Below, one piece after another: positions 5,240 to 56,500 of a stretch of 64,000 nt of DNA (within the stretch, counting starts at the first letter, position 1; every line of letters starts with the position of its first letter). The notes under the pieces are model-generated. The model was not told the origin of the DNA and made no database searches. It saw nothing but the letters and a program-made list of their open reading frames with translations. Made by a program: the position numbers and the translations under genes. The stretch covers positions 16,412-80,411 of the forward strand of contig CDMY01000420.1 of assembly GCA_001179505.1 (NCBI GenBank), in the 5' to 3' direction. This DNA is from Vitrella brassicaformis CCMP3155. Its lineage: Eukaryota > Protista > Chromerida.

Positions 5240-7732
5240 ATGCCTCCCCCCCGAGCGGCGGCCACCCGCGCCCGCCGGGCATCGCAGCCCATCCTTGTCC
5301 AGCGCCGGACCTCACACGCGCAGGACGACAGAGCCAATGCCCGAGCAACGTCGATGTCTGCCTGGTGCTGCTCACTGTTGAGGATACGGTGGCCTCCGTT
5401 TGCCCAAGATGCCAACAGGACGCCCAGTGAACAGAGCAGGATCAAGGTGGGCCAACATGCCACTTGATGATGAGCGCTCATCATCAAGTGTTGGTTTCGT
5501 GTCTTGTGTCGTGTGTTGTGGTCAGCGGGGAGCTCAGCATGAGGTGTTCCTGCAGAGGTCGTTTGTGATCGTGTGGACCTTTGCGCTTTTCTTCCTAGTC
5601 ATGTTCGTCGCCGCGCATGTCTTCCTGCGTACGAAAGACTCACACACAAACGAGAGACAAACACCCACTCAGATGGCGGGCATGTTTTCCTCCCTCTCTC
5701 TGTTGGTCGGTTGGCTGTGTGATCAGAGAGTTACGTTGGCCCTGCGTTTTTTGAGGTACGTGAGTTGAGAGGCAGCGACTTTCTGAGGAGATGCCGGTGC
5801 CCACGATGGCCGTGTGTGTGTCAGTTTTTCCTCGGCACAAGTATCCTCTCGACCGGCCTCTGGGCCGTCTACAGGCGACGCACAAGAGAACTGCAGCTAT
5901 TCATCGCCTCGTGAGCGAATCGCGCACAAACCACCACCAACACCCACACACCCACACACACACACGTGCCTGAGTGTCCCAACTTGCCTTGTGCACTCAT
6001 TCACCCTCCCCTCCCATGCAGTGGTTTCTTTAACGTGCTGCTGCTGACCCTGTGGGTGACGCGCGTGTCCCTCCCGTACGTCGTCGGTCACCACTTCATC
6101 CCCACCGGCGACACGCCCACCTTCACAGCAGAGGGCGACGGGGGCAACTCCACGCACAGCCTGCCGGAGGAACCATCACACACTGCTGAATGGTAGGTCA
6201 CTCTCAAACAGACAGGGAGGGAGGGAGGGAGGGAGAGGGTGGGTGCATACGTGTCGTTCGTGTGTGTGTGTGTATGTCAGGTATAAGGTGCTGACGTTTG
6301 GTGTGGTCGCGAGCATCCTCTCGTCAGCCGCGCAGCTGCTCCTCATCCCTATCGCCTACTATCTCATGTATGGCACACAGGCCAAAGCTTTGATACAAAG
6401 TCGTGCACACGAGGGGCTGTTGTTCATCAGGCGGCGTGCTGTGTCGTGTCCTTATCCGCCGGATCTCGTCCTGTCGGCCGTCGACACCTCTCTCACAACT
6501 ACACTAAATGTACGCGGAGCTGAAGGGCATAGGTGTGTGGAAGCCACCCCACTCCTGTGTGTGTGTGCGTGGTGTTGTGTGTTGTCTGTCTCGTGTAAAG
6601 GTCTCCCGTGACCCCCTGGACGAGTGGGAGGCGGGAGCCTTGTCGTCAGAAAACCCATTGCCGCCCAGAGATGTACGCGCAGCCACCGACCCAACCACCC
6701 ACACATGTACCCCTCATCACACTGTCTGTCTGTCTGTGTATTGATCGCATCAGGCCAGTCGTTGGTCGATTAGCGTCAGTGTGGCCAACACGGCGGTATC
6801 TCGGGAATGCGAAGACTTCATCGCTACGTACGAGAAATCCATTGACCAGGTAAGGTGTGCGGTGCATCTCGCCGTCCAGCACAGCACAGCACACACAAAG
6901 CACTGGCTGACGGTCGCGTCCATTTCCTCCCTCTCTGTTCTTTTTCTCCGTGCAGATCGTTGCGTCAGGGCACCTGCCCCGCTGCCAGGACCGAGTGGAG
7001 GCCGTCACGGCCGCACGCAGCGGCCTGCTCTACCGATGGCAGAAGCCTCAGATCAAACCCTCCCGGGCATACACGCCCCCATCTCCCTCACCCACACCAC
7101 CCCCACCCCCACAACCACAACCACCACAAGTGCCCGCCGACACGCTGGAGGACGGCAAGCAGCCGTCGCCCCCCTCGGCCGCCCCGAGCGAACGTGATTC
7201 TGAGCGCGTGGTGCCGCGCATCCCCAGCATCCCCAGCGGGGGGATCACGAGCTTCGCCAGCATGTCCACCTTGTCGTGTCTGTCGGAACACGGCACCACC
7301 ACGCACAAGGCGGCGTGTCAGGAGCCAGGCGGCTACCCCATCGCACGAGATGCCGTCCGCGACAAGACGGCCGGCAGTGTGGCCGACAAGTGCCCACACC
7401 CCCACCCCCAGGCACAGCCGCATCCACAGACGCCGTCTCCCCCCAGCGCACTCTCATCAGCCGTTCGAGCCACCATCTCGACCCCACGCATGGCGACGGG
7501 GTGCGCGGCTGCCCGGCACACCCACACCAAGTCCCTGACGGACCTGCGGCTGCCGGTGGTGGAGCGGCACCACTCGCTCTCGTCCAGTGCGCCATGCACC
7601 TCCCTCCTGGGGTCGGCCGACGACACGCCTCCGCCGCTGCTGTTCGCGACGCCGCAGAAGGGCGTGGGTGCGGCGAGTGACGCCGGCAATCGGGGACGCG
7701 GCAGCACCGCCACACAGCAGGTGGGAGGCTAG
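5240..7732 (+). CDS. Hypothetical multi-pass membrane protein with long disordered Pro/Ser-rich C-terminal tail
   Basis: GT-AG exons encode hydrophobic segments (SFVIVWTFALFFLVMFVAAHVFL; GFFNVLLLTLWVTRVSL; VLTFGVVASILSSAAQLLLIPIAYYLM). The last exon is about 260 codons and ends TAG 7732, just before the gap. Family not recognised. Confidence 0.6.
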
Positions 7733-7744
7733 ATAGTGTGGTGT

Positions 7745-8044
7745 NNNNNNNNNNNNNNNNNNNNNNNNNNNNNNNNNNNNNNNNNNNNNNNNNNNNNNNN
7801 NNNNNNNNNNNNNNNNNNNNNNNNNNNNNNNNNNNNNNNNNNNNNNNNNNNNNNNNNNNNNNNNNNNNNNNNNNNNNNNNNNNNNNNNNNNNNNNNNNNN
7901 NNNNNNNNNNNNNNNNNNNNNNNNNNNNNNNNNNNNNNNNNNNNNNNNNNNNNNNNNNNNNNNNNNNNNNNNNNNNNNNNNNNNNNNNNNNNNNNNNNNN
8001 NNNNNNNNNNNNNNNNNNNNNNNNNNNNNNNNNNNNNNNNNNNN
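7745..8044. other. Assembly gap (300 N), followed by a poly-G run
   Basis: Run of N; G homopolymer at 8045-8080. Confidence 0.99.
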
Positions 8045-8081
<37 letters not shown>

Positions 8082-8264
8082 AGAGGGGTTAGAGGGGTAT
8101 GTCGGTGGGTTTCCGACAGAGGCGCCGTCCACCCGTCCCGTCCGTCCGTCCGTATGGGTGCATAGGCCTTACCTACCTACCTACCTTGTACTACGCACTT
8201 GCGTATGCAATGCATGGCATGGCATGGCATGGTTGGGGGGACTGGGGGAGAGGTAAGGCGACCT

Positions 8265-8335
8265 GACCTGACGGGACGTGACGGGACGTGACGGGACGTG
8301 ACGGGACCTGACGGGACGTAACGTGACGTGACGTG
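8265..8335. repeat. Tandem 10-mer (GACGGGACGT/GACGGGACCT)n decaying into (GACGT)n
   Basis: Visible tandem array in microsatellite-rich intergenic DNA. Confidence 0.8.
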
Positions 8336-10736
8336 TGAGAGTGCATACACACACGTCTATCTATCTGTGTATATATATTATATACCGAGGGAGGGGAGTG
8401 GTCGACGGACGGACGGACCGACCGGGTGAGTGAGTGAACACATTTTATCTGTCTATATTGATGGATGGTTGGACTGACCGACGGACGAGTGATTGCCCTG
8501 TTGTTTTTCCGCACCATGTGTATGTATGGATGTGTGGTATCGTCGAGCACGGTGATCTATCGGAGAAGGGAGGGGAGGGGAGGACCTTTCAATCAATGAC
8601 GGCCTGACCGACCGTATATATTGTGTACACAGCCAGGGAGGGAGGGGCGGAGGCGGTGTTGCTGCTGCTGCTGCTGCGTCTGCTGTCACACACACACCCA
8701 CACCGGCGCCCATCCATCCATCCATCCATCCATGTGGTGCCTGTGGCCGCTTTCATGCTGTATGTGTGATGGATGTCACTCACCTGCTACATACATACCG
8801 GCCAACTACACTACACTCTTCACTCTTCACTCTGCCATGTCTGTCATCCTTCGGGACGCACTCACTCTCACTCACTCTCACTCATACTTGCTAGAGAAAT
8901 GCATACCTGCTCGCACAATCACCTACCTACTCGCAAGCTAACTGGGGGGTCTGGCTGTCTTCCTGCCTGTCTGTCTGTCTGTCTGTGTGCATGTGGATGA
9001 ATGGCGGGATGGGATGCATTGCATTCATGTCACACACCCACTTGCTGCCAGTCGGTCTGCCGCGCACTCACTCACTGACAGGGAGGAGGAGCCCTACCGG
9101 TCTCCCCCCACCCCCCACCCGTCACTCGTCAGCCAGTCCGTCTGTCTGTCCGTCTGTCCGTGTGCGACCGTGCAAATCGCACTCCGACTATCGCAATGCT
9201 CGTATGCCGTCCTGTCTTGTGTGTGTCGTCTTTCTGTCGCCCGTCGGTTGTGGTGGCGTCTCTCGTTGTGGTGCGTCGTCTTTGTTTATGGAAGTGAGGG
9301 TGGTCAAGGAGAGAAAGGGGGGGGCTTGCAGATGGTTTTCTAGTTTGCCAGCCAAGTGTGTGTCTGTCGATGAAGTCGATCGGTCGATCTTACGCGCGGG
9401 GAGAGAGAGATATATATAGAGAGAAGAAAGGCTGATGTTGTCTCGTTGTCGTTACTCTTGGCCTGTGGTCGGGTACTGATGGTCGCAGGACCACGACGGT
9501 CGCCTGACTACGAGGCCGATGGTCGTGTCGTGGTTGTGGCTGCTCTACCTGGCTAGATGGATGGATGGATGGATGGAGATCTCGATGGCCAATGGCCAAG
9601 TCTGCCTGCGTGCCTGCCTGCATGCCTGTCTGCCACTCATGGATAGCATGTGCTGTTATGTAATTGACGGCTGTAGCGTGGCTGTGTGTGTGTGTGTGTG
9701 TGTGTACCTTACGTACCACATTTGTGATCTCTCTCTCTCTCCCCCTTGTGTCTGAGGTCAGTATCTGTGCAACGAATCTGGGGCTGCTGGGTGTGGGTTG
9801 TGATGTGGCGTGATGTGCTGGATGGCCTTGCTGTGTGTCGATAATGCTGCGCATGACAATGACGCTCACTTTCTGGGGTGATTTTTACGGATATATACAT
9901 ACATACACACGATGAATGGACTCTCTCTACTCTGCGCCCTCATCCCCCGGCCCCGCCCCGCCTCCTTTTCTCCCGTGTGTGTGTGTCGAGAAATTTTGCC
10001 GTTCGTTGCATTCTTTCGCGGATCGATCGTTGTCCTGTCTGCCTGCTGATTTTGTGACGAGACGAGACGAGAGGGAGGGATTTTGCACTCACCAGCTGCC
10101 ATGCCATGCCATGCCATGCCATGCCAGCATGGCATGCAAGTGCGGCGTCCATGTGTGTGTGTGTGTGTGTGTGTGTCTTGTGGTTGCGAGGGCTGCCTCC
10201 GGGCACGCGAGAGAGAGGCGGCGGACACTCACGTAATGATGTCAGAAGGGGAGAGTGTTGCCTTAGTCCACCTGTCTGTTTACTTGCTTTACCTACCTGC
10301 CTGCCTGCCTGCTATAGGTCCCTAAGATTTTTCTCTTTGCACACCTGCAATCGGTCTGTCTGTCTGTCTGGCTGTCTCTATGTCTGTCTGTCTGTCTGTC
10401 TGGATGGATGGATGCGTGGATTTTTCCTTTTTGGCCCGGCGGACTTGACTGACTTGGATTGTAGGATTTTTTCCTGGCTCGTCATGCTCTCACCTGGCTC
10501 GTCCCACTCTATCCTGGTTTTTCGCCCATTGGATGGCACGCCATGGCGTGATCATTACATCAGGGAGTTTTTAAAAGAAGGGATAATGATCGGGCCATCC
10601 ATCTGTATACCCCGTGCAAGTGCCTTTTAAGTGTCGATGGGGTGGATGGATGTTGGCAATGGGGGTGCCTGCCTGCCATGCGCCTCGATCGACACGTCCA
10701 GATTGGATGGATGGATGGATGGATTGGCTTATCCAT

Positions 10737-10861
10737 GGTGTGTGTTCTGGTTTCGCTGCTTCTTCAGTCTCCTTGCTACGCGTTGCTGGCATCCAGACAT
10801 CCTCTGGATGCCGCGAGCCGTGGCGGGGAGGAGGAAGAAGCAGAGAACCAGATGCATCACC
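10737..10861 (+). ncRNA. Putative structured RNA: ~125-nt fold-back hairpin, copy 1
   Basis: Manual pairing gives TCTGGTTTCGCTGCTTCTTC/GAAGAAGCAGAGAACCAGA, CTCCTTGCTACG/CGTGGCGGGGAG (3 G-U pairs) and GGCATCCAGA-catcc-TCTGGATGCC. A homologous copy lies at 22132-22250. Confidence 0.5.
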
Positions 10862-12311
10862 AAATCTGTGCGTCTGGCGCAGAGACGGACCTTCGGAGGG
10901 TTTTGAGAGCTTTCTGTTCGGCGTGATGACCCAGGTCTGCCTAGCTCAACTCTTGCATACCATCCCAGTATCCCTGCTGCCCACGACTGACCTGACCTCT
11001 AGCCGCGTCTGTTGTCTCCGGTGTTGGCTTGGGTTTTTTCCTCTCTCTCTCTCTCTGCATTGCCTGCCTGCCTGCCTACCTGCCTACTTGATGCGTCGGA
11101 TGCGTTGGTTGGGTGTGACTGGGTGGGCGGACCATGGCTGGCCGTGCAGATCAATCAATGGCATTCAAGTAGTCATCCATGTACAAGCACACACGCAATG
11201 ATTGCAATCAGTGTCGCGGCAAGGCAAGGCAAGAGAGAGAGACAGGCATCGCATCGATCGCATCAGACACACACACGCACACGGACACACACACAGCTGA
11301 TCATGGTCAGACCATCCATACACACGCCGCGTCACGCCACCGGCACGACAAATGTCAACTCACACCACACCCTCACACCCTCACACCCACTCCTCACGCC
11401 GAGAGACAGAGCTATCACATTCCTCCTTCCTCCTCACCTCACCCCACCACGTAGTGGCCTGGCCTCGATTCACCTTCCTCGGGAACGGTGAACGCAAGCG
11501 AGCCTGCCTGCCTGCCTGCCTCGAATGAATGAGTAAGTATGCAAGTATTGTATGTATGGATGGCACCACAACACACAATGGTTTACATAAGTGAGGGCGA
11601 GCACTGAAAGACTCCATATACCCGACAGACAGACAGCCACCCAGCCACCGAGAGAAGTGTCGAAAAAGCCAGCGGGAGGAGGGAGGGAGGGAGGGAGAGA
11701 GAGGGGAGGATATCGACAGCATGTCAGCCAGTCAGAATGGGTAGAAACCGATTCAGGGTCACCAGGCGAGAGGGAGAGGGAGAGGAAAAGTCCGTGTGCA
11801 AAAATGAGAGCCAGTGGAGGAGCAAGACACGAGACCAGATAGGTAGGGTCCATTGTCTCCATTCATTCACGTTCGTTCGTATGATGGATGTACGCCACTG
11901 CTATTATGATACATGTGACACAACTCTGACAGACACGCACAGCCGCCCCGCCCCGCCCGCCTCTCAAGGACGAGACGAGACGGGGCGGGACAAGACCTGG
12001 CCTGTGTGTGTGCAAAACCGACCTGACCTTCCCCGCTCGCCCTGTCCCGACACAGTCCATGCGGCCCGGCGGGTGGGCAATACGAGGCGGACCAGGACGA
12101 CCCGACCAGACGAGACAGACACCATTCAAATAAAGCAGTGTGTATGCAGACGAAGGAAAAAACTGTCAACTCGACCCCCAGCTGCATCCATCCCTCTCCT
12201 CTCCTCTCTCCCGAAACACCCTCCATCCATCCATCCGCTCGCCGTTGTCGACTCAATCATTCAGTCAAGCCAACCTTATTGAGGTGCGTGCCGTCACACT
12301 GCGATGCGATG

Positions 12312-15300: not shown

Positions 15301-17432
15301 CTCTCTGCTGGCCAGTGGCGACAATGGCGTTGGCTGTTTGTCGGAGGGTATCGAGAGTGCCGTTGGCTACCGCAACCTCCTCCTCAGGGGCCGCCGCCAC
15401 GACCGGCGGGGAGCCGTCGGTGGCGTCGTCTTGGGACGCCTTGACTACCGGCATCGGCGGGGCCTCCTGCTCTTGCCTCGAGTCGTTTTCGGCAGCGTGG
15501 GTGGCCTCGGGCTCTTCAGTGATGGGCGTGGGGGGAGGGGAGAGGGGAGTCTCGTCCTCGGTGGGCTGGGGGGGCTGGGCGTGGTCGTCGGTGCTGTCTG
15601 GCAGGACGATGCGCACGCTGTCCTCCGGAGTGCCGTGGTGAAGGGCCTCCTCCTCTTCATGCTGATCTTGCTGGTCCTCCTCCTGCTCCTGCTGCTGCTG
15701 CTGATCCTCCCCCTCCTGCCGCTGTAATTGATCATCGCCAGCGGGTCTTTCCCTTGGAGGAGTCTGGATGGCGGCGGTGGTGTGGTGGATGAGGTCTGAT
15801 AAAATCGACACGGCTTGCGACACCAATATCGGGTCCTGAGGCACACGAAGCCGTGCCGTGGAGAAGGTGTGCTGTCTGTCTGTCTGTGTGAGTGAGTGTG
15901 TGGTCTTCATGTGTGTCGGGTCTGTACGTTTTGGAAGAGGCAGTCGACGAGGTGGTGTGTGCATTCGGTGGACGTGAGCTGCTGCATCAGGGCGGGCGCA
16001 TAGTACACCGACTCATACTTCTGCAGGAACATCCGGATGATCACCGCGACGTTCTCCGACACCTGAACCCCACCAAACAACACCGCCACCACCACCACCA
16101 CCACCACCCAACACATGAGTCAATCACACACATGACATGATGTGTCCCTCCCTGTCTGTCTGTCTGTCTGCGTACCTCTCCCACTCTGTCCTGGGGGTTG
16201 TCGTTTTCGGGTATGAGTCTTTGTACGATGCGCATCATGAGCGGGCTGCCGTGCCGGTCGGACGTGTCGAAGACGGCCTGCGGCTGCTCCTCCACACACA
16301 GGTACGTCACGAACAGATCCGTGATCGACCGGCTCCCCAGCTTGGCCAAGAAACCATCCAAGAGATCTTCCTTGCCACGGAGGTAGGACACCAGCTGAAT
16401 GAATGAACGAGTGAACCAGGGAGGGACGGAGGGACGGAGGGAGGAGGGACACACAAGGCAAACGATTGGTTGGTTGATGGATGGATGGATGGACAACATT
16501 CGTGTGCTGTGCTGTGCTGTGTGGAGTGGGTGTGTCGGGTCACCTGGCTGGTCTCTGTTGGCTTCTGCGTGTTGATGGAGGTCCGCATGAACAGCGAAGT
16601 GCACACACGCGCAAAGTACCCCGCCAGCACGTGATTCAGCTGCAGCCATCCATTCACCATCACGACACACCACATGTCATGGATCAGCAGATAGATACTT
16701 TGGTGTCTGTGTCTGTCTGTCTGTCTGTCTGTCGCTCACCGCGTTGGGTTGGTAGAGGAAGTCCCACAGAGCGTCCAGCACCGGACGGTTCTCAGGGTCG
16801 AGGAACGCCCTGACGACATCACACAAGCGATCGATCATCGGTAGGCAATGCTACACAGGCCTGTGTGTGTCGGGTGCGCACTGTAGGATGCGATCATTCT
16901 CCTGGCAGACCACTTCGGTCGCCATGAAGGGGAACCTGACAGACAGACAGACACACAGACAGACGGACAGAGAGAGCAGTACAGTGATGTGAATGGTGGG
17001 TTGGTGGTGTGGATGCGGTTGGCCATCGGTCGCTCACTTGTGTCCCCTGTTCTTATCAGCATCATCGGGCGGCACCACGACAATGTACTCCACCAGCCTC
17101 TCCAGCGAATCACGACGACACAAACTGATGTATGCAGGTCACACCACACAGACGCACAAGGCACAGACAGGCAGACACAAGACAAGACACACACCGTCGC
17201 GCATTCACTTGGGTGTCCGTCGTGTTTGCTTCTGTCTGTCTGTCTGTCCTCATGTGATTGCTCACAAGTCGACGACTTTGGCGTTGTTGCTTTTGATCTC
17301 CTGGATGAGCTCGTCGAGGTCGAGCAGTTTGTCCAGGGTGCAGTCCGCCGCTTCCACTATCTCGTCCACATTCACGCTCGACGCCTCCGGGCCGCCAAAG
17401 GTGCTCCAGAACAAACCACCCATTTGACCCAT
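12312..17432 (-). CDS. SIT4/PP6 phosphatase-associated (SAPS-domain) regulatory subunit
   Basis: N-terminus MGQMGGLFWSTF...TLDKLLDLDELIQEIKSNNAKVVDL and FPFMATEVVC, LNHVLAGYFARV, SRSITDLF, RPLGSTALGIV, FEFEWNNLLHNDV, GYISHI match the SAPS/PP6R pattern. It has a long acidic disordered tail. Confidence 0.88.
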
Positions 17433-20600: not shown

Positions 20601-22077
20601 AATGTGTGGGACCTTGTGTGCATATCTATCAGGTAGCTGAGGGCATCTCAGGGCATGCGGAGCAGGTGCGGCGCAGCGGGGCCGACACCAAGTTCTTGGA
20701 CTATGTCTTCCTGCGGGTAACAAAGAGGGAGGGAGGCGCAACGACCTACCTGTGCACACAAACGTCAGTCAGTTGTTCCCATTCGTTCTTTGCTGACGAC
20801 TGACTGAATCAGATGGCTGAGGCACTGATCAACGCCTGTGAGGACCAGGTAAGGTACTATCACGGCGCAGAAAGAAAAAAGGGCAATGACTCGCCCGGCT
20901 CGCCCCATTGTGTGCCTGTGCGTTTGTCATGATCATGACAGATCCGAAGAGCTCCCGACAGCCACTGGCAGTTTGCGTGGGCCATCTACGGGTACACAGC
21001 ACAGCAGCACTCACCGGCCATTCACCCACCCCCTCGCCCCCTCACCCACTCGCTGTGGATGTCTCTGTCTCTTTGTCAGTGTGTTGAGTCGCTTCCCTGA
21101 TAAGGAGGAGATCTTCGCGGGCCGCATCTACCAGGAGTGCACATACGCCATACCATTCCTCGTACCAATCGTAAGCCGCCCCCTCCACACACACCTCACC
21201 ACATCACAGAACACCTCACTTCATCCCTATCTCCGGTGTGTGCATCAGAGCGGCAACGTCGAGGCGGGCCGTCGGCGTCGCGGTCAGAAGGACGGCGAGT
21301 CCGACGAGGACTTCTTCGACCGCATGTGTCCCATCCTGCGCGTCTGGCTGGCCTACCTCGTCATCAAAGCTGAGATGTCTCGCAACCCCAACTCAAACGA
21401 GTGGGGGGCGGTCTGGCAGTGGTGGGCGCGGCTCGGCAACCGCCTGGTGGACCGCACGCAGCGGAGCGGCCCCATGCTCATTGTGACGGCACTCAAGGTC
21501 ACCGCGTTCTTCTGCATGAAGCGGTTCAAGAGACAGTTCAGACAGGTAGCTACGGATGGATGTCGGTGCCTTGGCCGTTGGGGTGGGGGGTGGGGGGTGG
21601 GTTGTGGGGCCATTGGTTGGCTGAGTGCGTCCGTGTGTGTGAGTGTGTGTGTGTGTTTGGTGTTGGCTGCTGGTGTGGTGTGCAGCTGTTGTCGTTCATC
21701 AACCAGAACCTGTGGGACAAGTTCAAGCGCATGGCACGCGAGTCCGTCCGTTTTCCAAACACACCAACAGACTCAGCCAGCCGCCATCTTATGCTGCCTG
21801 CCTGCCTAACTGCCTGCCTGTGTGTCTGTATGTGTGTCTGTGTGCAGCAACCCTGAGGGCATCGGCATCTACGTCGTGCAGTGCGAGACATTCCTCGAGA
21901 CAGCGCAGTAAGCCACCAACACACCACACTGGCGTGCCTGACGACCCACACCTCGTACTGTGTGGCTGGGGGCTGGGTTGGTCACTTGGTGCTTTCAGGC
22001 GGAACGGCTTACGTTTCGAGGAGCCAGCCGGCTATCGCATGATAGAGAGACCAGCCGAACTCAACCCTGACGTCTGA
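17673..22077 (+). CDS. GLE1: mRNA export factor GLE1
   Basis: Disordered N-terminus, E/R/Q coiled coil, then GLE1-domain motifs YQECTYAIPFLVP, DEDFFDRMCPILRVWLAYL, WQWWARLGN and LKVTAFFCMKRFKRQFRQLLSFI. Confidence 0.85.
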
Positions 22078-22131
22078 CTGAGGCGCGGGCATGCACCCAT
22101 GGATGGATGGATGGATGGATGGGGGTACCCA

Positions 22132-22250
22132 GGGTATCCTGATTTCGCTGCTTGGGATAGGCGCACGCGATGTATTGTTGGGCATTCAGACACCCTCTGG
22201 ATGCCGCGACCCAGCGCGGGGGTCACACCCAAGCAGCGGCATCGCCACCC
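22132..22250 (+). ncRNA. Putative structured RNA: ~120-nt fold-back hairpin, copy 2 (just 3' of the GLE1 stop)
   Basis: GGGT/ACCC, GATTTCGCTGCTTGGG/CCCAAGCAGCGGCATC and GGCATTCAGA-caccc-TCTGGATGCC stems. The core is 27/29 identical to 10788-10816. Confidence 0.5.
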
Positions 22251-22629: not shown

Positions 22630-24329
22630 TCACTGAGGCGTGTCCTGCCTGTTGATGCTCATGCTCCACCAGCTCATGTCATCCTCTATTTGACCCGCCG
22701 CACCCTCGATCAGCGAATACAGTGTCTGCCTGTCCGGGTCTCCCCCGCTGGCCACCATCTGCCGCTCGCCCCTCAGTCTGCTATTCCGCAGCATCGTGAA
22801 AAAGACCACCTCCTCGGCGGACAGGTCGGGGTGCCACATGTCGATGATCAAGACGAACCGCGTCACGGGGCCGTCGTGCCACACCTCGTGGGAGAAGGAG
22901 TCGTCGAAGACATAACACCGGCCCTGAGAGAGGATGGATGACACACACGCGTCACTTTAGAGGAATGGATGGATGGATTGATGGACGCACAGACATGTGT
23001 TTGTGCTGGCTGATTGACCTCGGTGGGCGTGATTGTCTGGTCACCGACACGCAGTCTGGTGCCCTCAAGACCCATGATCGGCTGCAGGCAGGCCAAACAC
23101 ACAAACAAATCGACCGACCGGCACATGGGCCATCTTGCCTGGACTGGATGCATACGTACCAGGTGTATTCTCAGTTTCTTGTTGGTGGGCCCGTTGTGAG
23201 CCCGGATGTGGGTGCCGGGCGTCATGGCACTGAACAGGGCGTGGCTGCAATGCAGCCATGCCACACACATGACATGACATGACATGACATGGCAGACAGG
23301 GGCAGAAGACCCGGCAGACAGCGCCGCCCGCCTACCAGTATTGCCTGGGGATGCTCTGGATGAACTCGACTGTCCGCGGGCACAGCGCCACGTTCTCAGG
23401 GAAGGGCTGCGGACAGCAGGACACACAGACAGACAGACAGACAGACAGACAGCACCATGAAGTCAAACACCCCCGTGCTCCTCTGTCTGTCGTCACTCAC
23501 CTGGTTGTGCAGCAGCAGATACAGCACATTCCAGTCGCCGCCCTCGTGGCTCGCCTGGCCGGGCACGCCATCGCCTTCCGATGAGGAGCTCGCGGCATCA
23601 TTGCCAGCTCTCTGACGTATCGGACCCCTGAGAGGGCACAAAAAACCCGTGTCGAGAACAACGGAGTCCATTTCCATGGTGCCTGCCTGACGCCTGGTCA
23701 TCTATCTACCTGTAGGGCTGAAAAGTCTGTCTGCCTCTGAGGGCGAGGAGCTCCTCCTTTATGACGGGATGAAGGGCCTCCAGCTGGCTGATGAACGGAA
23801 ACATATCGGCGGGCCACACTGCGTACACACACATTCACACACGACAAGGAGAGAACCAACCAACATGTGTGTGTGTGCCACGCACGCCACGTCGTGTTGT
23901 GTTGTGTTGTGTGACCTGGTCTGGGGGTGAGTTGTGGGATGATCTCTGGGCAACCTCGCTGGGAGGGATGGGGGTCCACAGGTCGACGAATGCCCATCTT
24001 CTGAAGCAACCTGACATGGCATACAGAGGGAGGGCGACGAACATCCATCCATCCCTCCATCCATCCATTGGCTGGATGTCTCTATTCATCGCTCACCAGG
24101 CTCTCGCCCGTTCACACTGATCGAAAGGGAACACACACACAGCACAGCACACCACACCAACTGGGTCAGCAAAGAAGTGCGTGTCCATATGACCGACCTT
24201 ATCGTTGCGGCCGTCAGCGATGCACCTCCGCACGAACGAGCCGAATGCGGCCCTATGGAGCGGCGGGAGAAGGTACTCATCCATGACCTCCTCCATCCTC
24301 CGCCGGACCCGCTCCTCCAGCGTGCCCAT
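22630..24329 (-). CDS. Aspartyl/asparaginyl beta-hydroxylase-family 2OG-Fe(II) dioxygenase
   Basis: GDWNVLYL, MTPGTHIRAHNGPTNKKLRIHL and FDDSFSHEVWHDGPVTRFVLIIDMWHPDL match the AspH catalytic domain; both Fe-binding His and the 2OG-binding Arg are present. Confidence 0.9.
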
Positions 24330-36137: not shown

Positions 36138-37228
36138 TCGACAAATGGGTCGATGGATGCATGGAGACGCGTACAGTAGACCGTGTGACTGACTGACTGG
36201 CCCTGCGTGATGTCTGGTTTGCTTCTCATTTTGCCTTGCCATTCTTGACGGCTGGCTGGGTGGGTGGGGCGGGGTGGGGTGGGGTGGGGTCGGTGGGTGA
36301 AGTGATGGATGCATGGAATGACTGAGGAGGAAAGAAGGAAGGCTTTTTGCGTGTGATGTGATTGATGTGGATATGACGATGTTGAGCCATTGATTGGCGC
36401 CACGTGCGGTGCTTCCACCCCGAGCAAGCGATGGAGGGATGGAATGATGGATGGGTGGATGGATTGCAACAGACAGACAGCTTGCTGCATGGGCAGCAAG
36501 CTAATGCGTGCTGTGGACGCCATTGATGCATGGTGTCCTCGTCATTCAGGGCTGGTCTTCTTTGTTGTCCATGATGTACCTCCGCTGTTCGATCAAGTGA
36601 CATGATCGAAGACGGCAGCGGTACGTCACGGCTTTGGCAAAAAGACCAGCGCTGCACGACAAGAAGAGGACGCTGCTCACTTACTGGGTTCGTATTGAGA
36701 ACCACCCGATGTGCTGCGTGTCTGTCGTCTGTTTTCGTGTCTTCCTCCGTCACGCAACCGCTTGATGTCAGCCCACACATTGGGTGGATGCGTGTGGGGG
36801 TGGGGACGCAGTAAAACAGAAGGCGGGCACCGAGCGAAGGGTGTGCTGGCCACATGGCAGGACGTTGCATGCAGTGAGACAGACAGACCTCTGCGATACG
36901 CACGCAAGGAAGATATTTTTGCATGTTATCGGGCTGCCAATTCGCCATGTGTCGCCAATGCTGATCACATCTTCATAGGAACAGGCGCCAATCCCTCACT
37001 CACTCACTGAATGCCATGCAAAATGGTCTGTGTTCCACCACGCAGCCCGTCTGTCCCTATGGCTGTCTCCATCGGTGTCACACACTCGGTTACTGGTCAA
37101 TCGTCATGCGGGATGCCACTGGCTGGCATCGTCGGGCGACAGGGCACTCTTCACCTCCAACACTGAGCGCCAGTCAGGCGACGGATACCTTAAACGCACA
37201 CAGACAGACAGACAATCGGTGTCTCCGA

Positions 37229-39586
37229 CTACAGATTGCTTCCAACCCACCACGTGTCTTTGGTGTCCGTGTTGACACGCGGCGATGGCGGGTGGTGCCC
37301 TTTCCGCTTCCCCTTCTGCGGCGAGCCAGACTTGTCCAGGTTGAGCGATTTCAGGCTCATCAGTAGCTTGGCTGTCGACGGGCGGCTGCTCTTACACACA
37401 CCACTCAACGCAGGAACCGTATGAGACCGCCGCATTCCATTGGTCCTCCCAGCCTTCAACAACCGCAATGTCGGCTGGCCGGGGAAGAATGGCGACACAT
37501 AATTGGCCGTGTCAGCAGGGGCGCTGTGTGGTGCGGGCGGTAGGTGTGGGCTGGGGGGTGTGGGCAAGAGGCGGTTCGCAGGTGAGATGGGCGGAGACAG
37601 GATGTGGCTTGCGATGGCTGGTGGCTTGGCAACGGGTGACTGTGCGAGTGGTGTGTCGGATGGGCCGAGGAGAGCGGAGATGAGATTGGGGCGTGCGTTG
37701 CGGGTCTTGCTCGCCGCCCTGCGATTTGCGGTCATGTCCACCTGGACGCAAAAGAGGGAGTGAGTCGAATGAATGACCATTGACTTCTGTCTGATCAATG
37801 AATGAGTCTTACGAGTGATCCGGTCCGTCTGATACCCTGCTTGACCTTGACAGCGCTAGTGTATCCCCCTCCAAGGCTGCCCGACCGCTTCACCGGCTGC
37901 TTGTCGCCACTCATTTCCTTGCCTTTCTCCTTTTCCCTCTCCCTCTCCCTCTCCCTCTCCAGAGGCGGCAGATACTTGGCCTTCTTGTTCCGGTCAGCCT
38001 AATGGGTGGGCACACAGCAGCCAGCATCATCATAGCTGTCTGTCATCGAGTGACGTGACCACGTCTCACCATGTCTCGTACATCGTCGAATACGAAAAGA
38101 GTGACGTGTCTCATCAGCCGCGTCTTGATAGGTGACGGGGGCGCCGTGGAATGGCTGGGCAGCGACAGGCCGGGCGTGTTGTGTCGCGCGTCCTCGATCT
38201 CGCGGATCAACCGGCGCATCTTCTTCTCGTGCACATTGCGGTGCCGCAATTTCCCTGTAATGGCTTTAGGGCTGTCCTCTGCATCGTTGATCATGAGCAA
38301 ATCCTCTGCCGACGAGAGAGAGGAGCTGCTGAGCCCATGAGGTGCGAGTCGGCTGACATCCGGCAAATCAACACTTCTCTCTCGTTTGAGCGGCATGAAG
38401 GTCCAGGGCGCCTTTCTCCCGCCCTGTCTGTGTGGAGGTGTGTCCTCCTCGCCAAATGGGTCCTCACACCAAGTGCCCTCGTCGCCGGTCAGCTCCTGCC
38501 CATGCGGGCTTTCACGCAGTCTGTCGGGTCGCTTCCGATGTCTCCTGTTCTTTTGTCGCTGCCGCTTGGGGAACCCATAGCACGCGGGGGAATCGCTGTC
38601 GCTGGACAGCGCATCCATGATGGCGGCCTGTGTCAGAGCGTCGCGAGGGACGAAGGTGGGCGGCTGCGAGGGCTTTCTCACCGACAGGTGGCGGCGCCTC
38701 GATCTCCGTGGTGTGGGCGGGGCCTTGACGTCTGGCAGGACGATGTGGGTGGCCTTTGTGAGGACGGACCACTGGCGCGGCTGGGCTCTGCTTCGAGACG
38801 AAGACCGTCTGAGCCTCGTCTCACTTGGTATGCCTCTCAAAGCCTCTAATGGGGAGCCATTGAGCTGCAGAAAGAGGGAGAATTAAGCAGACGCCGTGTC
38901 GTGACGGATCTTCCCTTCCTTCGTGCCCCGACCTGTAGTCCATTTGGTCCGTCACTGTACTGCTTCCTGGGGGCGACTTCTGGCGATTCCGTCGGTGAGT
39001 GGTCCGGTGTGGGCAGCTTGCGATACGGCCGCTTGGGCGACCTCCGGACTGTTGGTTCTTCCATTGGCTCATAGTAGCCGCTTTCCGCCAGACATGCTGT
39101 CATGAAGTTCCACGCCTCCGACGCCCCCTTGAGCGTCTCCTTCTCTGCTTCCACCCCAGCGGCTGCTCTCTCCTCTTTCGCCGGCTGGGGAACATGAGCA
39201 GGGAAGCCGTGATTGTGGTGGTGGGGACGCGGCTGCAGGGTCTCTAACAGTGTGTGTTTGCCTGAGGGCACTGCCCTGAGGAGTGAGGGGCTTGGAGCCA
39301 AAGGCCCGTTGAGGCCGAACACGCCCTTCCCGCCGCCATTTGTCGACCCCCATCTGCTGACAATTGGCGAGCCGTCCTTGTGCGGCTCCCTGTTGATCGG
39401 TGGGAGATGGTGTCTGTGGGCGTGGCTGACAGGTGGCGAGGGGCTGTTCCGTACTCTTCCAGAGGGGGCGATGTGGCCTGCCACTCTCGCAGGCACCCGC
39501 TTGGCAGTGACGGGAGGGTCAAGGGGAGGGGAGAGGTCGATGGGCCGCAAATCGCAATGCCGCTTCTCAGCGCTTCGAACTGACAT
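37229..39586 (-). CDS. Hypothetical low-complexity S/P/R-rich disordered protein
   Basis: Three long minus-strand ORFs (38846-39634, 38043-38840, 37229-37798) plus a small ERERERE exon appear joinable through GT-AG introns. No domain recognised; the ends are uncertain. Confidence 0.5.
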
Positions 39587-42900: not shown

Positions 42901-45900
42901 GCAGATGCCAGATGATATGCGATGCGCATTGAAGTGTCTGTCTGTCTGTCTGTGTGTGTGTGTCTGTCCTGTCTCTCTGTAGGTGTTGGTAGAGATGGAC
43001 GAGCGGCAAGCGAGAGGTAAATGCTCACTGGTGAGCACGGCAGACAGACAGACACCCTGACCGACAAACAACACCAACACTCCTATCCATCCCCAGCCAC
43101 GGCCAACGATGGATGGTGTCTGTCCAACAGAGGCCCATCGGCAAGGCAAGACAGTGCCCCTGGCGGAGAGGGAAGCCGTCGTATCGGCCCTTGCCGTGCT
43201 CGAAATGGTAGGCCCAACACAACACACCTCAGCCTTCTTTTCATGTCCTTGTGTGTGTGTGTGTGTGTGTGGTCAGTGCCTGGCCCATTCCGAGTACAAT
43301 TTCCACGCCAGGTTCCTGAGTCTGCTCATCTACAGCCACTTGGGGCTTGGTGCGGCCGCCCAGTCCTTCATCGTCAAGCTCGACTTCAAGAACGTCCAGT
43401 ACGAGGCACTCGGATACACGCTCTTCGACACATACTTGGACTCCGCCATGATGTAACCAACCCCTACACCACCCTCCACACACACACACACACACGCGCA
43501 ACACGCAATACATTCACAACGACTTATCTGTGTGTCTTTCTTTATCTCCGTGTGTTGAATGATGTGATTGTGATGCAGCCCCGAGGCTCTGGAGGTGTGC
43601 AAGGAGATGTGTGAGTTGGAGGCCGACTTCTACCGGCAGACGCAGGACGCCATGCAGAATGCATACGAGCACGAGAGCTACGGCAGGGTCGCCGACTTCA
43701 CCGCGGCACTCGACAGGATGAAGCGGTCCATGCAGCCCGTCAGGGCCGAGGTCATGGAGGGCCTCATGAACCTGCAGCAGGCACTGGGGGACACCTCCCA
43801 GGGCGACGGGTTTGGCGACATGGCGCTGCTCGTGCAGAAGGACATGCCAATGCTCAGGAAACACGCCGGTGGGTCGGGTGTTTCCAGACAGACAGACAGA
43901 CAGATGGTTCATCGTTTGTCGTTTCCCTCCCTCCCTGTGTGTCGTTGTGTTGCTTGCAGGGATGTCGTTGTCTTGGTACCAGCTGAATCAGGACCGGCAG
44001 GTGCATCTGAGGTGCACCTCCGTCCCCCCCTTCCCAGCGCTGCCGCCCTCACCGCCCCCATCCCTCACATCAGTCATCCCACCTGCCACCTTCATCTCCC
44101 ACCCCCCCACACACACCCAACCACAACACACACAGACACAGCCAACGGCAACCGGCGCCACGAAGACATCATCAGCAGGAGATGACGACCACGCGAGCAG
44201 CAGCAGCCGGGGCAGCCACAGTGACAACGACGGGGGTGTGGCCAGCACCATCCGTAAGGTGCCGCCGGTGAGGTGCGCGTCTGTGCCAATGCCTGTGGTG
44301 CCTCCTGTGGCTGCGGCCGAGGGTTATGGGGGCTTTGTGAGCCTCTTCCTGCCCAGGTTTCAGGAGATGCCGGCTTGCCTTAAGTGAGGGAGGGAGTGGC
44401 CGGCCAGGGAAGGGAGGGAGGGGAGGCAGGAGGGGTGCTGTGCTGTGTGTGCTGGAGAGAGTGGTGTGGTGTGGGTGTATGTGTGTGTATGGCTTGATGC
44501 AGGATGTGGGCGACTGCGTTGTCGATAGTGTGTCTGCTGTACGAGAAAGACCTGGACGAGGCGTCAAGGATGCTCAGCGACCTCCGACACCTCATGGCCA
44601 TCACAGGTGTGTACCACACACACAGACAAATACACACACATTGCCAGGAAGACTCTTTCCCCCGTCTGATCCACATTCACCCACTCGTCAGGCATCATCC
44701 AGGCCCAGCAGCCTCTCCCCAGGCCAGAGCATGACACAGCCTTGCCATCACCGCCCACCGACGACACCGACAGCACGTCAGCAGCAGCTGCAGCCGATGC
44801 CGCAGATTCGACGGACGGCACTGCCCCTGCACCGTGCAGCAGGTTGTGGTGGGGCGATGACGCCCACGGGATCAGCTCCCCACCACCGCCGTGGGACACT
44901 ACATCTGGAGAGCCATCGGGCAGAGACAAAGCGGTGAGTGAAAGCAAACGAACAGGGCATATGGCTGTGTGTCAGTCATATTTGGTTTGTCTGTCTTTGA
45001 CCCGTGCGTGTGCGGCACGTGACTGGCAGTTTTGGCGGATGACCTATCTGTGTCTGGATGTCGCCCATCGGGTGCTGGAGGCGTGTGGGCCGTCCCATCC
45101 CAACGGCAGCACTAGCAGCAGCAGCAGCCGCCCACCACCGAAGCCCTCCCCCGCCCCTGCCTCCACTGCCCCCCTGGCAGCGTCCAGCTCCTCATCCCTA
45201 TCGCTCGCAGACGGCCCCGACCCATCACACACACACCGATCTCCAGCCGTTGATGACGTGTCGGTGCGGGCGGGGTCGACTTGGGAGGATGTGGAGAGGG
45301 GGCTGGAGGTCCTCACGCAACTGCTGCCTGGTCAGGCCTGACATCAGGGATTCTGCTGTGTGTGGTGGCGGAGCACTTGGAGCTGCTTGGCTGTGCGTGT
45401 GTATGCGTGTGGTGTGGTGCAGATGTGATGAGGATAGGTGGTGGGCTGGAGACTGCGGATGAGAGCAAAGGCAAGGAGGCGGGCGGGACGGCTGAGGCCG
45501 CTGGTGGTGGTGGTGGTGGTGATGCGGCAGTGGGGCGGTTCCAGCGCTTCATGTGGGATGAGGGCGGGTGCACAGGTGCGGTGGGCTGAGCTGAACACAC
45601 AGCAGGCGACGCGACCAGTGATTGCAATGATGTGCCGTCCCGTCTCCGTTTCTTGTCTTGGTTCAGGTTGCAGCCGTTTCCTGCTGGGTCCGCTGCTGTT
45701 TGTGACGGCCCTCTTCCCCTGGATCGCACAGACCATGCCCAGGGCGCGCAAAGACAAAGACAAATCCGCCGTGAGCACAATAAATAGCCATAAACAATGG
45801 CCATGCCGATGACAGACAGCATCACAGGACGTTTCTCTCTTGGTCCCGGCTGCGTTGGTTGCTCTGTCTGGTTGCTCTCGTGTCAGGGTCCGTCTGCCGT

Positions 45901-46403: not shown

Positions 46404-47943
46404 GGAGGGTCTATCACCACACCATTCACTCGTGTCGCGGTGGCATCACTAAGCTATCTGTTCATGGCATTTGACGGGACTCTAATCGATCCACACGCTC
46501 GTCCACTCAGTCACTGGGTGGGAGGTTGACAATTGCGTGCTGTGCCATGACCGTGTGTGCGTGTGTGTACAGCGAGCGAGAGCACTAGCTGTCTGCCTGT
46601 GCGTGAGACAAGCAACCCCTGCGTGGTGACTGCAGATGACGGATCGTTGATGAGCCCTTTTCCACTGAAAGCATTCACCGTAGCATGATCTGATCCAGCC
46701 ACTGTCGCAACGTAGGTCACAATGCTGCCGCCTTCAAGTCAACATACGTACGTCGCTCTTAGCCCACGACCAAGCCCTCCAAGCTACACGTGTACAGCAC
46801 CTTCCTGGCTGCCGTTCACACGTAGCCCGCGCCAGCAGGGCCGGAGGCCAAGAGCGACGCAGACCATCCAGGCTTCATCCACACACACGCGCCCAGCAGT
46901 CAGGCCGACGAACATCCCTCTTACCGAGCCATTCATCCAGTCGCCTCACGCACACTACGGACCAGAAATGAGACAGCCAGGAATTGAGGCTCACGAAACC
47001 ATGCGGACGCCACAGGCACCGTCCCCGCCCCGTCTTCTCCCTTGTTGCCCTTTCTGGAGCGGGGCCGAAACGAGGGCTTCCATCCCCTCACTTCGGTGCT
47101 GCACCGCAAGGACTACAAGAGAGACGACGAGGCAGGGAGGGGCGATAGACAAGAGACATTCAGCCGCCAATCGGATACATACACACACATACATGGTGCA
47201 CAGCGCCTGCCTGCACAACACGGTTGCCCACATCTGGCTCGCCCGAGGGCACACGCACACGCACGGGATTGAAACCATATACGTGATAAAAACACCGTGC
47301 GTGAGATCACGCACTCACTCAGAAACACGCCAATGACCTCGCTGCATTGAATGAATGACCTTCGTTGTGTTGTGTGTGTCAGTGAACGAAAGTATGTGAG
47401 TGGGTGGGTACGGAAAAGCGAAGCGGGCAGGAAAATCGCTGCTCAGGCGGAATGAGAAAGCCTGGCTGTGTGCACCGTCTCACACACGCACACACATGGA
47501 GAGAGAGAAAAAGGGGGCCGACTTGACGTGACAGGCCCATGCCACTGATCCATCCATGTTACACAGAGACGCAGAGAGATAGAGAAATAGACAGAGATGC
47601 CCGTCCGTGTCCAATCCAATCCAATCCATCACTAAAGCCGAAAGGAACACGCGAGAGTGGATGGCTGGGTTGCATGGGGGCATGTTCGGTGCCACGCGCA
47701 TCGCATCGAGGGGACCAATCCCTCGGCGGTCAGTGAGTGCTCCCGTCCGCTCAGCCAGCAAAGGGAGAGGGGGAGAGCCGAAAAAACACACGTGACTGAC
47801 TGACTGACTGACTGACTGCAACCGACCGACCTTACGTGTACAGACACACACATACACACAGATAGATAGCCTTCCTCCCGCCTCTCTCTGGCCGTCATAT
47901 CTGTCTTGTGCGGGTGCCAGGGTGCCATGGATCAGTCAGTCAA

Positions 47944-53334: not shown

Positions 53335-53512
53335 GGGGAGCCCCCCGTTTTCGTCCTCTCGCGTGGAACTGGTGCGATACACAGGTACAGTACAATCACT
53401 CAGTGCATGATTCATGATGCGTCGTGATTCATTCCTTTCTTTGCTCAGGGTGAGAAGCAATTGGCTGAGGCTGGGCTGAGGGGCGGTGTGTTCTCGGGTT
53501 TCAGCACTGCAG

Positions 53513-56500
53513 ATGGCGGGGGCTGAGGTGGAGCAATCATCGTCGAGCTCACGTGCCCACCGCAGTTTATCATCCAAGCGAACCTTCAACAAGATACCGC
53601 CATGGATCATGACGCTCTTTGCCAATGTTGATGACTCATCATCGAGGGCCCGACATGTTGCTCAGCGGCTGTTTCTGGCTGGCACGTCACGGTCGACGAG
53701 GGAGAAACCCCCTCCCGGCATGCATAGATTCAGTGTCCACGGCAAAGAGGTTGACTATGTCGAGACGGTCAGACCAGAGTGTTTCCACACGGAACAACGC
53801 AGACCATTGGAGAGCATCTGTGCTGTCTTTCTCCTCTATCCTTCGGTTTGCCTGCAGTCTTTGCTTATCTTCAAGCCCAGTAACGGCATCCTGTTCTCTT
53901 TCCGACGGATGTGCGTGTGGATGATCGAGTGGAAATGGTTCGAGCGGCTGGCCCTCACAGCCATCGTTCTCAATTCGATTTCTCTGGCTATGGTCGACCA
54001 TCACCCCAGCCACCCAGAGCCTTGGCGCGTCAAACTAGAGGAGGTGTCTGAAATCGTCTTTATCGTGATATTCAGCGTCGAACTGGTGATCAAGGTGGTG
54101 GGAAAAGGGCTGTGGATGGGGCGGGAGACGTATCTGTCGGACCGGTGGAGTTGGCTGGATCTTGTAGTGGTCGTGACGGCGTGGCTGGAACGGATACTCT
54201 ACGCACTTATCCCGCAATCGGTCAATCTCACCGTCATCCGGACCTTCAGAGTGAGTGACGCATCCATATGCAGGCAGGCACACACGTTGCTCTCTCTGTC
54301 TGGTCATATTCCGGCCGCTGCGGAGCGTCAACGCCTTCCCTGGCATGCGTCTCGTCGTAGTGACTCTCTTCACCTCCCTTCCCAAGCTCTGGAATGTCTT
54401 CCTGCTGGCGTGCTTCGTCCTGGCGCTCTTCTCCATTGTGGGGTGCGTGTACTTGCATACACGTGTGTGTCGTATGATGTGGCTCCCTCTGGTTTTTGTG
54501 TGTCAGCTTGAACCTTTTCAGTGATGTGTATTGGAGCAGGTGTCGCTTGATAGACCGACCTGTCAATGGCTCCTGGCCGCCAGCAGTGGATATCGATCCT
54601 GCGCCATTCGAGAGACCACTTGACAGGTGTGGACGTGCATGTCTGAAATGGCGAATTATGCAGGTGTGTGTTGCTGGTGCGCAAAGGTTTTGTGGAGGCG
54701 CCTATGGGTGTGAGGCTCACACAAAGCTATATCGCATGGCCGGCATCGCCAACAGAACATACTGCGGTACGCCCGAGGCAACCAGATATGCACCAGCCAG
54801 AGTCTCCAACGGATGACACTTCAGGCAACATGTGGCATGTCTCTGATTCGGAGCTGTCGCAAGATCGATGGCACGAGGTGAATACTTCACCGCATGCACA
54901 CATGCTTCTGTCGTGTCACTGCTCGCTGACGTTGCGACTGCAGCTGGAGAGCAACCCTGCGGCCGACTACGGTTACACTGGTTTCCATCACATGGGTGTA
55001 GCCTTTTCTACCGTGTTTCACGTTATCATGGTGGAGGGATGGACTCAGCTGATGTACAGGTGAGATGAAAGGGAAGGGGCAATCGACTTGATGTACATGA
55101 CTGGATTCGTTGTCTCATTTGTCCAGGTTTCAGGATGGACACGCGATGAGTTGGCTTGCCTCCCTCTATTTCTCACTGCTCATTCTCCTGGGGGCGCTGG
55201 TACGGCCGCGCTCTAATGGCTATCAATAACTGCAAGTCACCGAATCTGTCCCGTTCCTTTGTTTGTTTGTTTGTTTGTTTGGGTCACTTTGTAGTCAACC
55301 TGACGGTGGCCGTCATGTGGGAGCGCTATGAGGACCAGCTCAGACAGACTAAGAAGGAGGAGGGCAATGAAGTAAGTAGAAGAAGAAGCCACTGTCATGA
55401 ATGATTGCAGCGGATTATCCGCAGGACGAGGGGAGTGTGAAGCTGGGGATGAAGCTGATTCATCATATCGCAGAGGCACAGACCACATACAAAGCGGACC
55501 ATTGCCAACACAGACATGTGATCTGTCTGCTTCCATTCAGGTGGCCACAACCATCAAAAAGCATAAATACGTCCTGGTGACTCACATGGCACCATCTTCA
55601 CCTTGTGTGTGAACGAGTGCCGCGTGTGTGCTCAGGAGTCGAGTGCCAAGGCTCGCTTGGTGGACGAGTTGCCGACTTCAGAGACCCCACTGTCTCACAT
55701 CGCAAAAGGCAAACTGTACGGATACACACAGGACGCGTGTATTTATGACCAGACGGTCCATGACAGTCTTTAAACCTGTGTGTCCGTCTATATGTCTTTA
55801 CCCAGGTGGCTGCAGGCCCTCTGTGCGCGCATTGCATTCCATCCGATGTTTGTGCTGCTGATCCTCGTGTCCATCTTCTGCAACACCGTCGTCTTGGCTC
55901 TCGATCGTTATCCGGAGCCTGCGGCGGGGATCACACAGACACTCGACGCCGTCAACCACTCATTCACCGTGAGCGACAAAAGGTCATGATTGGGCCGTGA
56001 CGAATAGCCGACCGCGACACATACTGTCTGGCGTATTCAGGGTCTGTTCACCTTTGAGGTGCTTATCAAGTGCATCGCATTGGGGCCCGTCGATTTCGTC
56101 CGAGACAGCTTCAACATATTTGGTGACCCGTTTAGTTTCCTTGGCTACGCGATATTGACGTAGACCCCTGATGAACGATTCGCGTCCCTGCTCCAGTGCA
56201 GATGTGGCGGTCGTTCTGGCTGCCTGGATTGAGTTCTCCATGGGAGGTGCGGGAGCGGCGGGAGCGCTCCGCGCTTTCCGTCTGCTTCGGGTGCTCAAAC
56301 TCGGTCGCAACTGGACGGTATGAGGATTGGTGAGCATCAAAAGCAGACCACTTGCATGCTTGGCTTCTTGTGTCTCGCTCGCTTAGTCCCTTCGGATATT
56401 GCTGGAGGTCATCTCGAGGGCGCTAACCCTCATGTCTTCGTTCTGCCTGCTGCTTTTCCTCGTGATCTACATATTCGCACTCATCGGTATTCAGTGAACG

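Follow-up and report, generated by a model that had tools for sequence, protein, structure and literature searches.

A family of three long hairpins with strand-specific RNA-type pairing in the genome of Vitrella brassicaformis

The DNA under study (hereafter the window) is a stretch of 64,000 nucleotides of Vitrella brassicaformis CCMP3155, positions 16,412 to 80,411 of contig CDMY01000420.1, which has about 58% G+C and is rich in microsatellites. Two long hairpins of related sequence lie on its plus strand, at 10737..10861 (copy 1) and 22132..22250 (copy 2). Copy 1 is located in about 4 kb of microsatellite-rich DNA without coding signal (8100-12000, with GGAT, CTGT, GCCT, CATG-type and TG microsatellites), behind an assembly gap, and on its own strand no exon-like ORF lies within 2.7 kb upstream. 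The gap, which is filled with N from 7726 to 8044 and continues into about 36 successive G (7726-8080 altogether), represents a scaffold join, so that the sequence just 5' of the noncoding stretch is incomplete. A noncoding stretch of this length is unusually long for a genome in which the median spacing of annotated transcripts is 92 bp (PMC4501334). From this spacing it follows that much of the noncoding DNA of Vitrella is probably transcribed as UTR. Copy 2 lies between two convergent genes, whose intergenic interval does not exceed about 1 kb. Its upstream neighbour is a plus-strand exon with a GLE1 domain (20886-21809, E 7.6e-15), whose stop codon (21807-21809) precedes the start of copy 2 by 323 nt; convergent with it around copy 2 is a minus-strand exon with an Asp/Arg beta-hydroxylase domain (22863-23426, E 1.2e-7). 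Elsewhere in the window, an ORF at 53486-54511 (+) matches Ion_trans (E 7.7e-17) and probably belongs, as one exon, to a gene for a cation channel of the voltage-gated type.

Relatives of these hairpins were searched for in 72,700,666 bases (72.7 Mb) of the genome, in 1064 contigs, by BLAST of copy 1, by a pattern for the apical part with up to three mismatches, and by a covariance model (R1; 120 positions, 48 pairs) built from the aligned copies. The same three loci were obtained by all three methods, with no further members. Copies 1 and 2 score 106 and 118.6 bits with the model, and the third locus lies on the minus strand of a separate contig (G000:C859:208558-208676, copy 3). The initial annotation had described a family of two copies; both are real, and the copy on C859 makes three. 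An extra match of the model on C98 (E 0.77) has no core sequence in common with the family and was set aside as unrelated. When the extended 361-nt unit of copy 3 was used for BLAST against the genome, the three copies and nothing more were found, and BLAST with the 99 nt located 3' of copy 1 gave a self-match only. Metagenomes were also scanned, for the apical core and for a two-block pattern; there was no match, and hence no orthologue outside the Vitrella genome. Copy 3 is preceded by more than 1.3 kb of noncoding DNA like that around copy 1, and about 150 nt behind it the assembly has a gap; among the ORFs in its vicinity, the closest one with a protein-family match (pentapeptide repeats) is about 4 kb off, on the other strand. 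Only copy 2 has a close same-strand stop codon upstream. In addition, tblastn of all ORF peptides between the three neighbourhoods (12-18 kb each) returned the hairpin itself and low-complexity matches, and no paralogous genes.

All three copies fold as single unbranched stems of 46-49 bp. Copy 1 (125 nt, about 49 bp, 5-nt loop CAUCC) has a minimum free energy of -83.0 kcal/mol on the plus strand and -64.2 kcal/mol on the other strand, with z scores of -10.3 (200 dinucleotide shuffles) and -7.6, respectively. For copy 2 (119 nt, about 46 bp, 5-nt loop CACCC) the energies are -61.0 and -53.3 kcal/mol (z -4.6 and -2.4), and for copy 3 they are -60.4 kcal/mol on the shared strand and -48 kcal/mol on the complement (z -4.5 and -2.4). 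The long irregular hairpin first described at copy 1, and its homologue at copy 2, are thus borne out as folds. The window contains the 25-nt apical core at two places, with 0.00 occurrences expected by chance. In agreement with what had been read from the letters, the apical 29 nt of copies 1 and 2 are identical at 27 of 29 positions, and TTTCGCTGCTT is common to both. An inverted-repeat search of the window did not list the family hairpins because their arms are too mismatched as DNA, with 37-46 of about 60 aligned arm positions matched.

Comparison of the copies shows two blocks that are held in sequence, one of 15 nt at the base of the 5' arm and one of 36 nt forming the apical stem-loop. 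The basal block (10747..10761, CUGGUUUCGCUGCUU, in copy 1; 22139..22153, CUGAUUUCGCUGCUU, in copy 2; both on the plus strand) has the consensus CUGRUUUCGCUGCUU and is 93-100% identical among the three copies, and its partner in the 3' arm is 28-53% identical in the alignment. The block is held in sequence beyond what pairing needs, and the partner drifts through G.U pairs. The apical module (10783..10817 in copy 1), which consists of a 4-bp and a 10-bp upper stem with a CAYCC pentaloop, is 83-94% identical. Between the two blocks, identity amounts to 24-38% in the middle of the 5' arm and 45-65% in the middle of the 3' arm, and most flanks are at 21-47%. In the pair of copies 1 and 3, the values are 93% for the 5' basal block, 38% for the 5' middle, 94% for the apical part and 22-39% for most flanks. 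Since identity jumps in this way between adjacent segments of one copy pair, uniform neutral decay does not fit. In the rest of the genome, the 15-mer with at most one mismatch had 10 other matches against about 6 expected, which is the chance level, and none of them lies in a hairpin.

Pairing is kept in the family even though the mid-stem of the 5' arm has diverged to the background level. The RNAalifold consensus contains 48 pairs, with 87.5% of the cells paired, and when the 3' partners were slid by 1-3 columns the paired cells dropped to 40-48%. Twelve of the 48 consensus pairs show a change in both partners; the corresponding number is 6.4+/-1.7 in shuffles, none of 500 reaching 12, and 2-5 in the slid versions. 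The compensatory exchanges that had been pointed out between copies 1 and 2, namely CUUC/GAAG versus GGG/CCC and, at the base, GGUG/CACC versus GGGU/ACCC, are both present. The count of compensatory pairs in the mid-stem depends on the alignment, the mid-stem being nearly unalignable, and all covariation comes from three paralogues; with three sequences only, covariation statistics are weak. It is a sturdier statement that each copy, taken singly, keeps an unbranched stem.

The shared strand folds better than its complement by 8-19 kcal/mol in every copy. G.U pairs number 7, 6 and 7 in the minimum-energy folds of the three copies, and A.C 1x1 mismatches are absent from these folds. Because folding rewards G.U pairs by construction, an arm alignment blind to wobble was added, in which the 5' arm was aligned to the reverse-complemented 3' arm with plain match/mismatch scoring and no credit for wobble. 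In the three copies, 17 transition mismatches of the G:T type (wobble on the plus strand) were counted versus 3 of the A:C type (binomial p=0.0026), which upholds the wobble bias claimed for the plus strand by the initial annotation. The 5' arm is pyrimidine-rich and the 3' arm purine-rich; with this composition U.G and C.A are both possible, and the test is therefore a fair one. At alignment columns 48/80, within the apical module, the three copies share an invariant U.G wobble, which taken as DNA would be a conserved mismatch. The mismatches of the family are thus those that RNA tolerates, and on one strand only.

The homology of the family exceeds the limits of the hairpin at both ends. As had been noted, a (GGAT)n tract precedes copies 1 and 2: it is a (GGAT)5 tract in each case, at 10704..10727 (+) and 22100..22123 (+). 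In copy 3 the tract is degenerate, having decayed to GGAGGGATGGGTG. Just 5' of the tract, ATCGACACG is common to copies 1 and 3, and about 50 nt on the same side align between copies 2 and 3 (score 26 versus a null maximum of 24). As homology continues 5' of the tract, the (GGAT)n sequence is internal to a homologous unit of roughly 270-300 nt. On the 3' side, local alignment of copies 1 and 3 gave a common block (10881..10927, +, in copy 1) that starts about 20 nt 3' of the hairpin, begins with AGAGACGGACC and contains GUUUUGAGAG; it spans 47 nt at 74% identity (score 36 versus a null maximum of 26 in 300 shuffles) and is unrecognisable in copy 2. Tracts of (GGAT)3 or longer number about 16 in the first 34 kb of the window, counting both strands. 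A tract at the equal place in the copies is inherited, not a coincidence, and it is not a terminal tail.

The best reading of the family is that of a gene or element specifying a structured RNA and present as three old paralogues, and we put the probability that an RNA hairpin is under selection on the shared strand at about 80%. The family is undescribed and, with three members, is not a repeat. A scan of the window with Rfam 15, whose families include SECIS, snoRNA, Y RNA and miRNA models, gave no match at gathering thresholds, tRNA included, in keeping with the earlier view that no known RNA class can be assigned. A permissive Rfam scan of the three loci returned generic matches to miRNA precursors only, the best being MIR6426 with 25 bits versus a gathering score of 96 (E 0.23).

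For the role of this RNA we tentatively propose a microRNA-like or otherwise RNase III-processed hairpin precursor, a proposal to which we give somewhat less than even odds. The transcribed strand would be the one with UUUCGCUGCUU in the 5' arm, and small RNAs would be released from the hairpin by an RNase III-type enzyme, Dicer-like or other. The conserved block of the 5' arm, a candidate for the 5' part of a mature small RNA, may represent the 5' half of the guide RNA, and the partner arm, as 'star', would be freer to vary by way of G.U pairs. The apical stem-loop may serve as a recognition or measuring feature for the processing enzyme or a partner protein, which would resemble loop-to-base processed plant precursors or loop-measured cleavage of the Rnt1 type.

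Several features bear on this proposal. In its favour are the length and imperfection of the stem, the better conservation of one arm, the existence of paralogues, and the other long hairpins of the window with their tandem pairs. A candidate 21-nt 5p duplex that begins at the conserved UG leaves 4, 4 and 6 positions unpaired in copies 1, 2 and 3; by the miRNA-duplex criterion of at most 5 mismatches, copies 1 and 2 are within the limit and copy 3 is slightly over it. With regard to a mature arm, the 5' block (93-100%) exceeds its partner (28-53%), but the apical stem-loop is also conserved (83-94%). This apical part is the best-conserved part of the family and is usually the least conserved in microRNA precursors, which argues against the precursor reading, as does the homology past the hairpin, which a minimal precursor does not need. 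A genome-wide search for antisense targets of one candidate 21-mer with up to three mismatches gave 0 reverse matches, and forward matches were at the control level; this too counts against a precursor, as do the chance-level matches of the 15-mer. Judged from domain matches in the genome, the machinery would probably be available to Vitrella: Piwi domains exceed the cut-off at 4 loci and RNase III domains are found at 4 loci, and the RNase III genes are candidate Dicers. PAZ and Piwi exons lie on the same strand, 2-3.5 kb apart, at G000:C537:21682-24174 (-) and at G000:C309:28486-32133 (-), which suggests two Argonaute-type genes. The Piwi match on C309 is just under the cut-off, and the matches on this contig include one TAG inside each open frame.

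Alternatively, the hairpin may be a cis-acting structured element of longer transcripts (3' or 5' UTR, or a long non-coding RNA) that is read by a protein and gives rise to no small RNA. The apical stem-loop and the 15-nt block would then be read, for example, by a dsRNA-binding or loop-specific factor that controls 3'-end formation, localisation or stability. Stem-loops that bind proteins usually have a conserved loop and upper stem, and the partial conservation of the flanking blocks also speaks for such an element. It is further favoured by the position of copy 2 behind the stop codon of the same-strand GLE1-domain exon and by the close transcript spacing of the genome, by which most noncoding DNA would be UTR (PMC4501334). 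However, copy 1 is far from any upstream same-strand exon-like ORF, within its 4 kb of noncoding DNA, copy 3 has noncoding DNA upstream and its matched ORF on the other strand, and a common regulatory need is not suggested by the neighbouring genes, none of which are paralogous between the copies. On balance we regard a cis-element as rather unlikely.

It is less probable still that the hairpins are a non-functional relic, that is, an old duplicated inverted repeat whose stem has been refreshed by template switching (quasipalindrome correction), with the wobble excess resulting from a strand-biased mutation spectrum in transcribed DNA. Transcription-coupled asymmetries are usually smaller than a bias of 17:3, which counts against this explanation. 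The three dispersed copies with their fading flank homology do look like old duplicates, and three sequences give covariation statistics little power. Moreover, template switching during replication is documented to create and maintain hairpins, and it can yield changes that mimic compensation without selection (bioRxiv 10.1101/2021.04.15.439925). However, template switching gives perfect Watson-Crick arms, and here each copy has 6-7 G.U pairs. The jump from 38% to 94% identity between adjacent segments of a single copy pair, and a T:G mismatch that is invariant in 3 of 3 copies, also disagree with a relic.

It seems very improbable that the hairpins belong to a different class of independent small ncRNA gene, such as one transcribed by Pol III and terminated at a run of T4-T5. 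In favour of such a gene, a TTTT or TTTTT run is present 39-58 nt 3' of each hairpin, and the unit is longer than the hairpin. However, two of the three T-runs are homologous and hence not independent, inspection of the conserved parts by eye showed nothing resembling a TATA, A-box or B-box motif, the (GGAT)n tract occupies the position where an upstream promoter is expected, and no Rfam family matches.

A hairpin followed by a microsatellite tail resembles the 3' ends of stringent-type LINE/SINE pairs, and on the minus strand the hairpin of copies 1 and 2 does directly precede an (ATCC)n run. Nevertheless, the SINE-like element with an (ATCC)n tail that had been offered as one option, in which the hairpin of a minus-strand non-LTR retroposon would be the 3' stem-loop recognised by the reverse transcriptase, is hardly credible, since homology passes the tract and leaves it internal, the tract of copy 3 is merely degenerate, the strand bearing the tail folds 8-19 kcal/mol worse than the opposite one, there are 3 copies only and no partner element with the hairpin, and transposable elements total 1.5 Mb in the Vitrella genome (PMC4501334).

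Other classes were considered and rejected. A MITE or foldback transposon is contradicted by the 3 copies, by the homology past both hairpin ends and by the 17:3 wobble bias (p=0.0026); the many copies by which the initial annotation would have recognised a plain MITE are not there. Such elements have in common with the family an inverted repeat of about 120 nt, a hairpin and dispersed sites, and they are unlike it with respect to the copy number, the arms matched at only 37-46 of about 60 positions, the wobble bias, the homology past the repeat and target-site duplication: by inspection, no direct repeat was found at the hairpin feet of the three copies. A mirtron was discarded because the feet GGUG, GGUA and GGCG, which are followed by AG soon after, are poor donors by eye in comparison with others in the genome. 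A pseudoknot of the loop CAUCC with the upstream GGAUG repeats was discarded because the loop of copy 2 reads CACCC and the repeats upstream of it show no corresponding change. Finally, the hairpins lack the AUGA/GA quartet, have too long a stem and find no Rfam match, so that SECIS or kink-turn elements do not apply.

The closest known systems are MIRNA precursors of the plant and algal type, including those of the loop-to-base miR159/miR319 type and the long-hairpin miRNAs of Chlamydomonas; the nearest case phylogenetically is provided by the miRNA families of Toxoplasma gondii. With such precursors the family has in common a stem that is long (about 45-50 bp), imperfect and interrupted by small bulges, strand-specific G.U pairs, one arm segment better conserved than its partner, and membership in a small paralogous family; the conserved upper stem is shared with the loop-to-base precursors, and Argonaute (PAZ plus Piwi) and RNase III genes in the Vitrella genome are a further likeness to these systems. 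In contrast to them, the terminal loop itself is conserved in the Vitrella family, one candidate guide has no near-perfect target, and Rfam miRNA models give E 0.23 or worse. A second comparison is offered by substrates of Rnt1p-type RNase III, in which a conserved terminal loop sets cleavage 14-16 bp below. The module of the family, a terminal loop with about 14 bp of upper stem, is of the size that this enzyme measures, but its loop is a CAYCC pentaloop and not an AGNN tetraloop. We know of no Rnt1p-type enzyme that has been characterised in the Vitrella lineage.

Chromerids are the closest photosynthetic relatives of Apicomplexa, and Vitrella is free-living. Toxoplasma keeps a small-RNA pathway, and Plasmodium has lost it. 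In the literature searched, no miRNA has been described in chromerids and no work on small RNA, Argonaute or Dicer in Vitrella was found; RNAi, Argonaute and small RNA go unmentioned in the Vitrella genome paper (PMC4501334). A hairpin family with constraint at the RNA level, together with other one-strand hairpins of the window, provides concrete loci for a study of small RNA. If these loci are processed, they would reveal the form of the ancestral small-RNA system of the apicomplexan lineage. If they are UTR elements instead, they would constitute a new, sequence-defined structured motif in a genome whose noncoding DNA is mostly UTR. Long one-strand hairpins that resemble small-RNA precursors are a familiar kind; it is the family itself that is undescribed.

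Further long hairpins occur in the window. The whole window was screened for hairpins that are unbranched, contain 40 bp or more and reach -0.5 kcal/mol per nt or lower. The screen yielded 16 loci, a few of them G-rich or of low complexity, versus 3 in a single control with local dinucleotide shuffling. Six clean ones have no sequence relation to the family according to the covariance model. They are like the family in size class (107-140 nt), in one-strand RNA-type pairing and in their location in noncoding DNA, and differ from it in being single-copy or tandem, the family being dispersed in three copies. One may go further and suppose that Vitrella has a sizeable undescribed repertoire of microRNA-like hairpin genes, of which the three-member family would be one, with a 5p guide beginning UGAUUUCGCUGCUU and an apical stem-loop that directs RNase III processing. 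We hold this wider supposition to be doubtful; if true, it would provide the first microRNA-type genes reported in chromerids. An association of (GGAT)n with hairpins in general was not significant: among 9 unrelated hairpins, 3 are preceded by the motif at a distance of up to 150 nt, at a base rate of 0.17.

Two of the six are single hairpins on the plus strand, at 39323-39444 (-63.2 versus -46.2 kcal/mol on the other strand) and at 45181-45309 (-65.8 versus -60.4 kcal/mol). A tandem pair of 47-48 bp each lies on the minus strand, 157 nt apart, at 46749-46861 (-73.8 kcal/mol on the minus strand versus -49.6 on the other) and 47019-47140 (-77.7 versus -64.9). The other tandem pair, on the plus strand, is formed by hairpins at 36547-36654 and 36713-36835, which are 58 nt apart. 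The second of these has 51 bp with 12 G.U pairs, and its energy is -68.0 kcal/mol on the plus strand versus -35.3 on the other strand. A GGAT-rich tract is located about 80-115 nt upstream of this pair.
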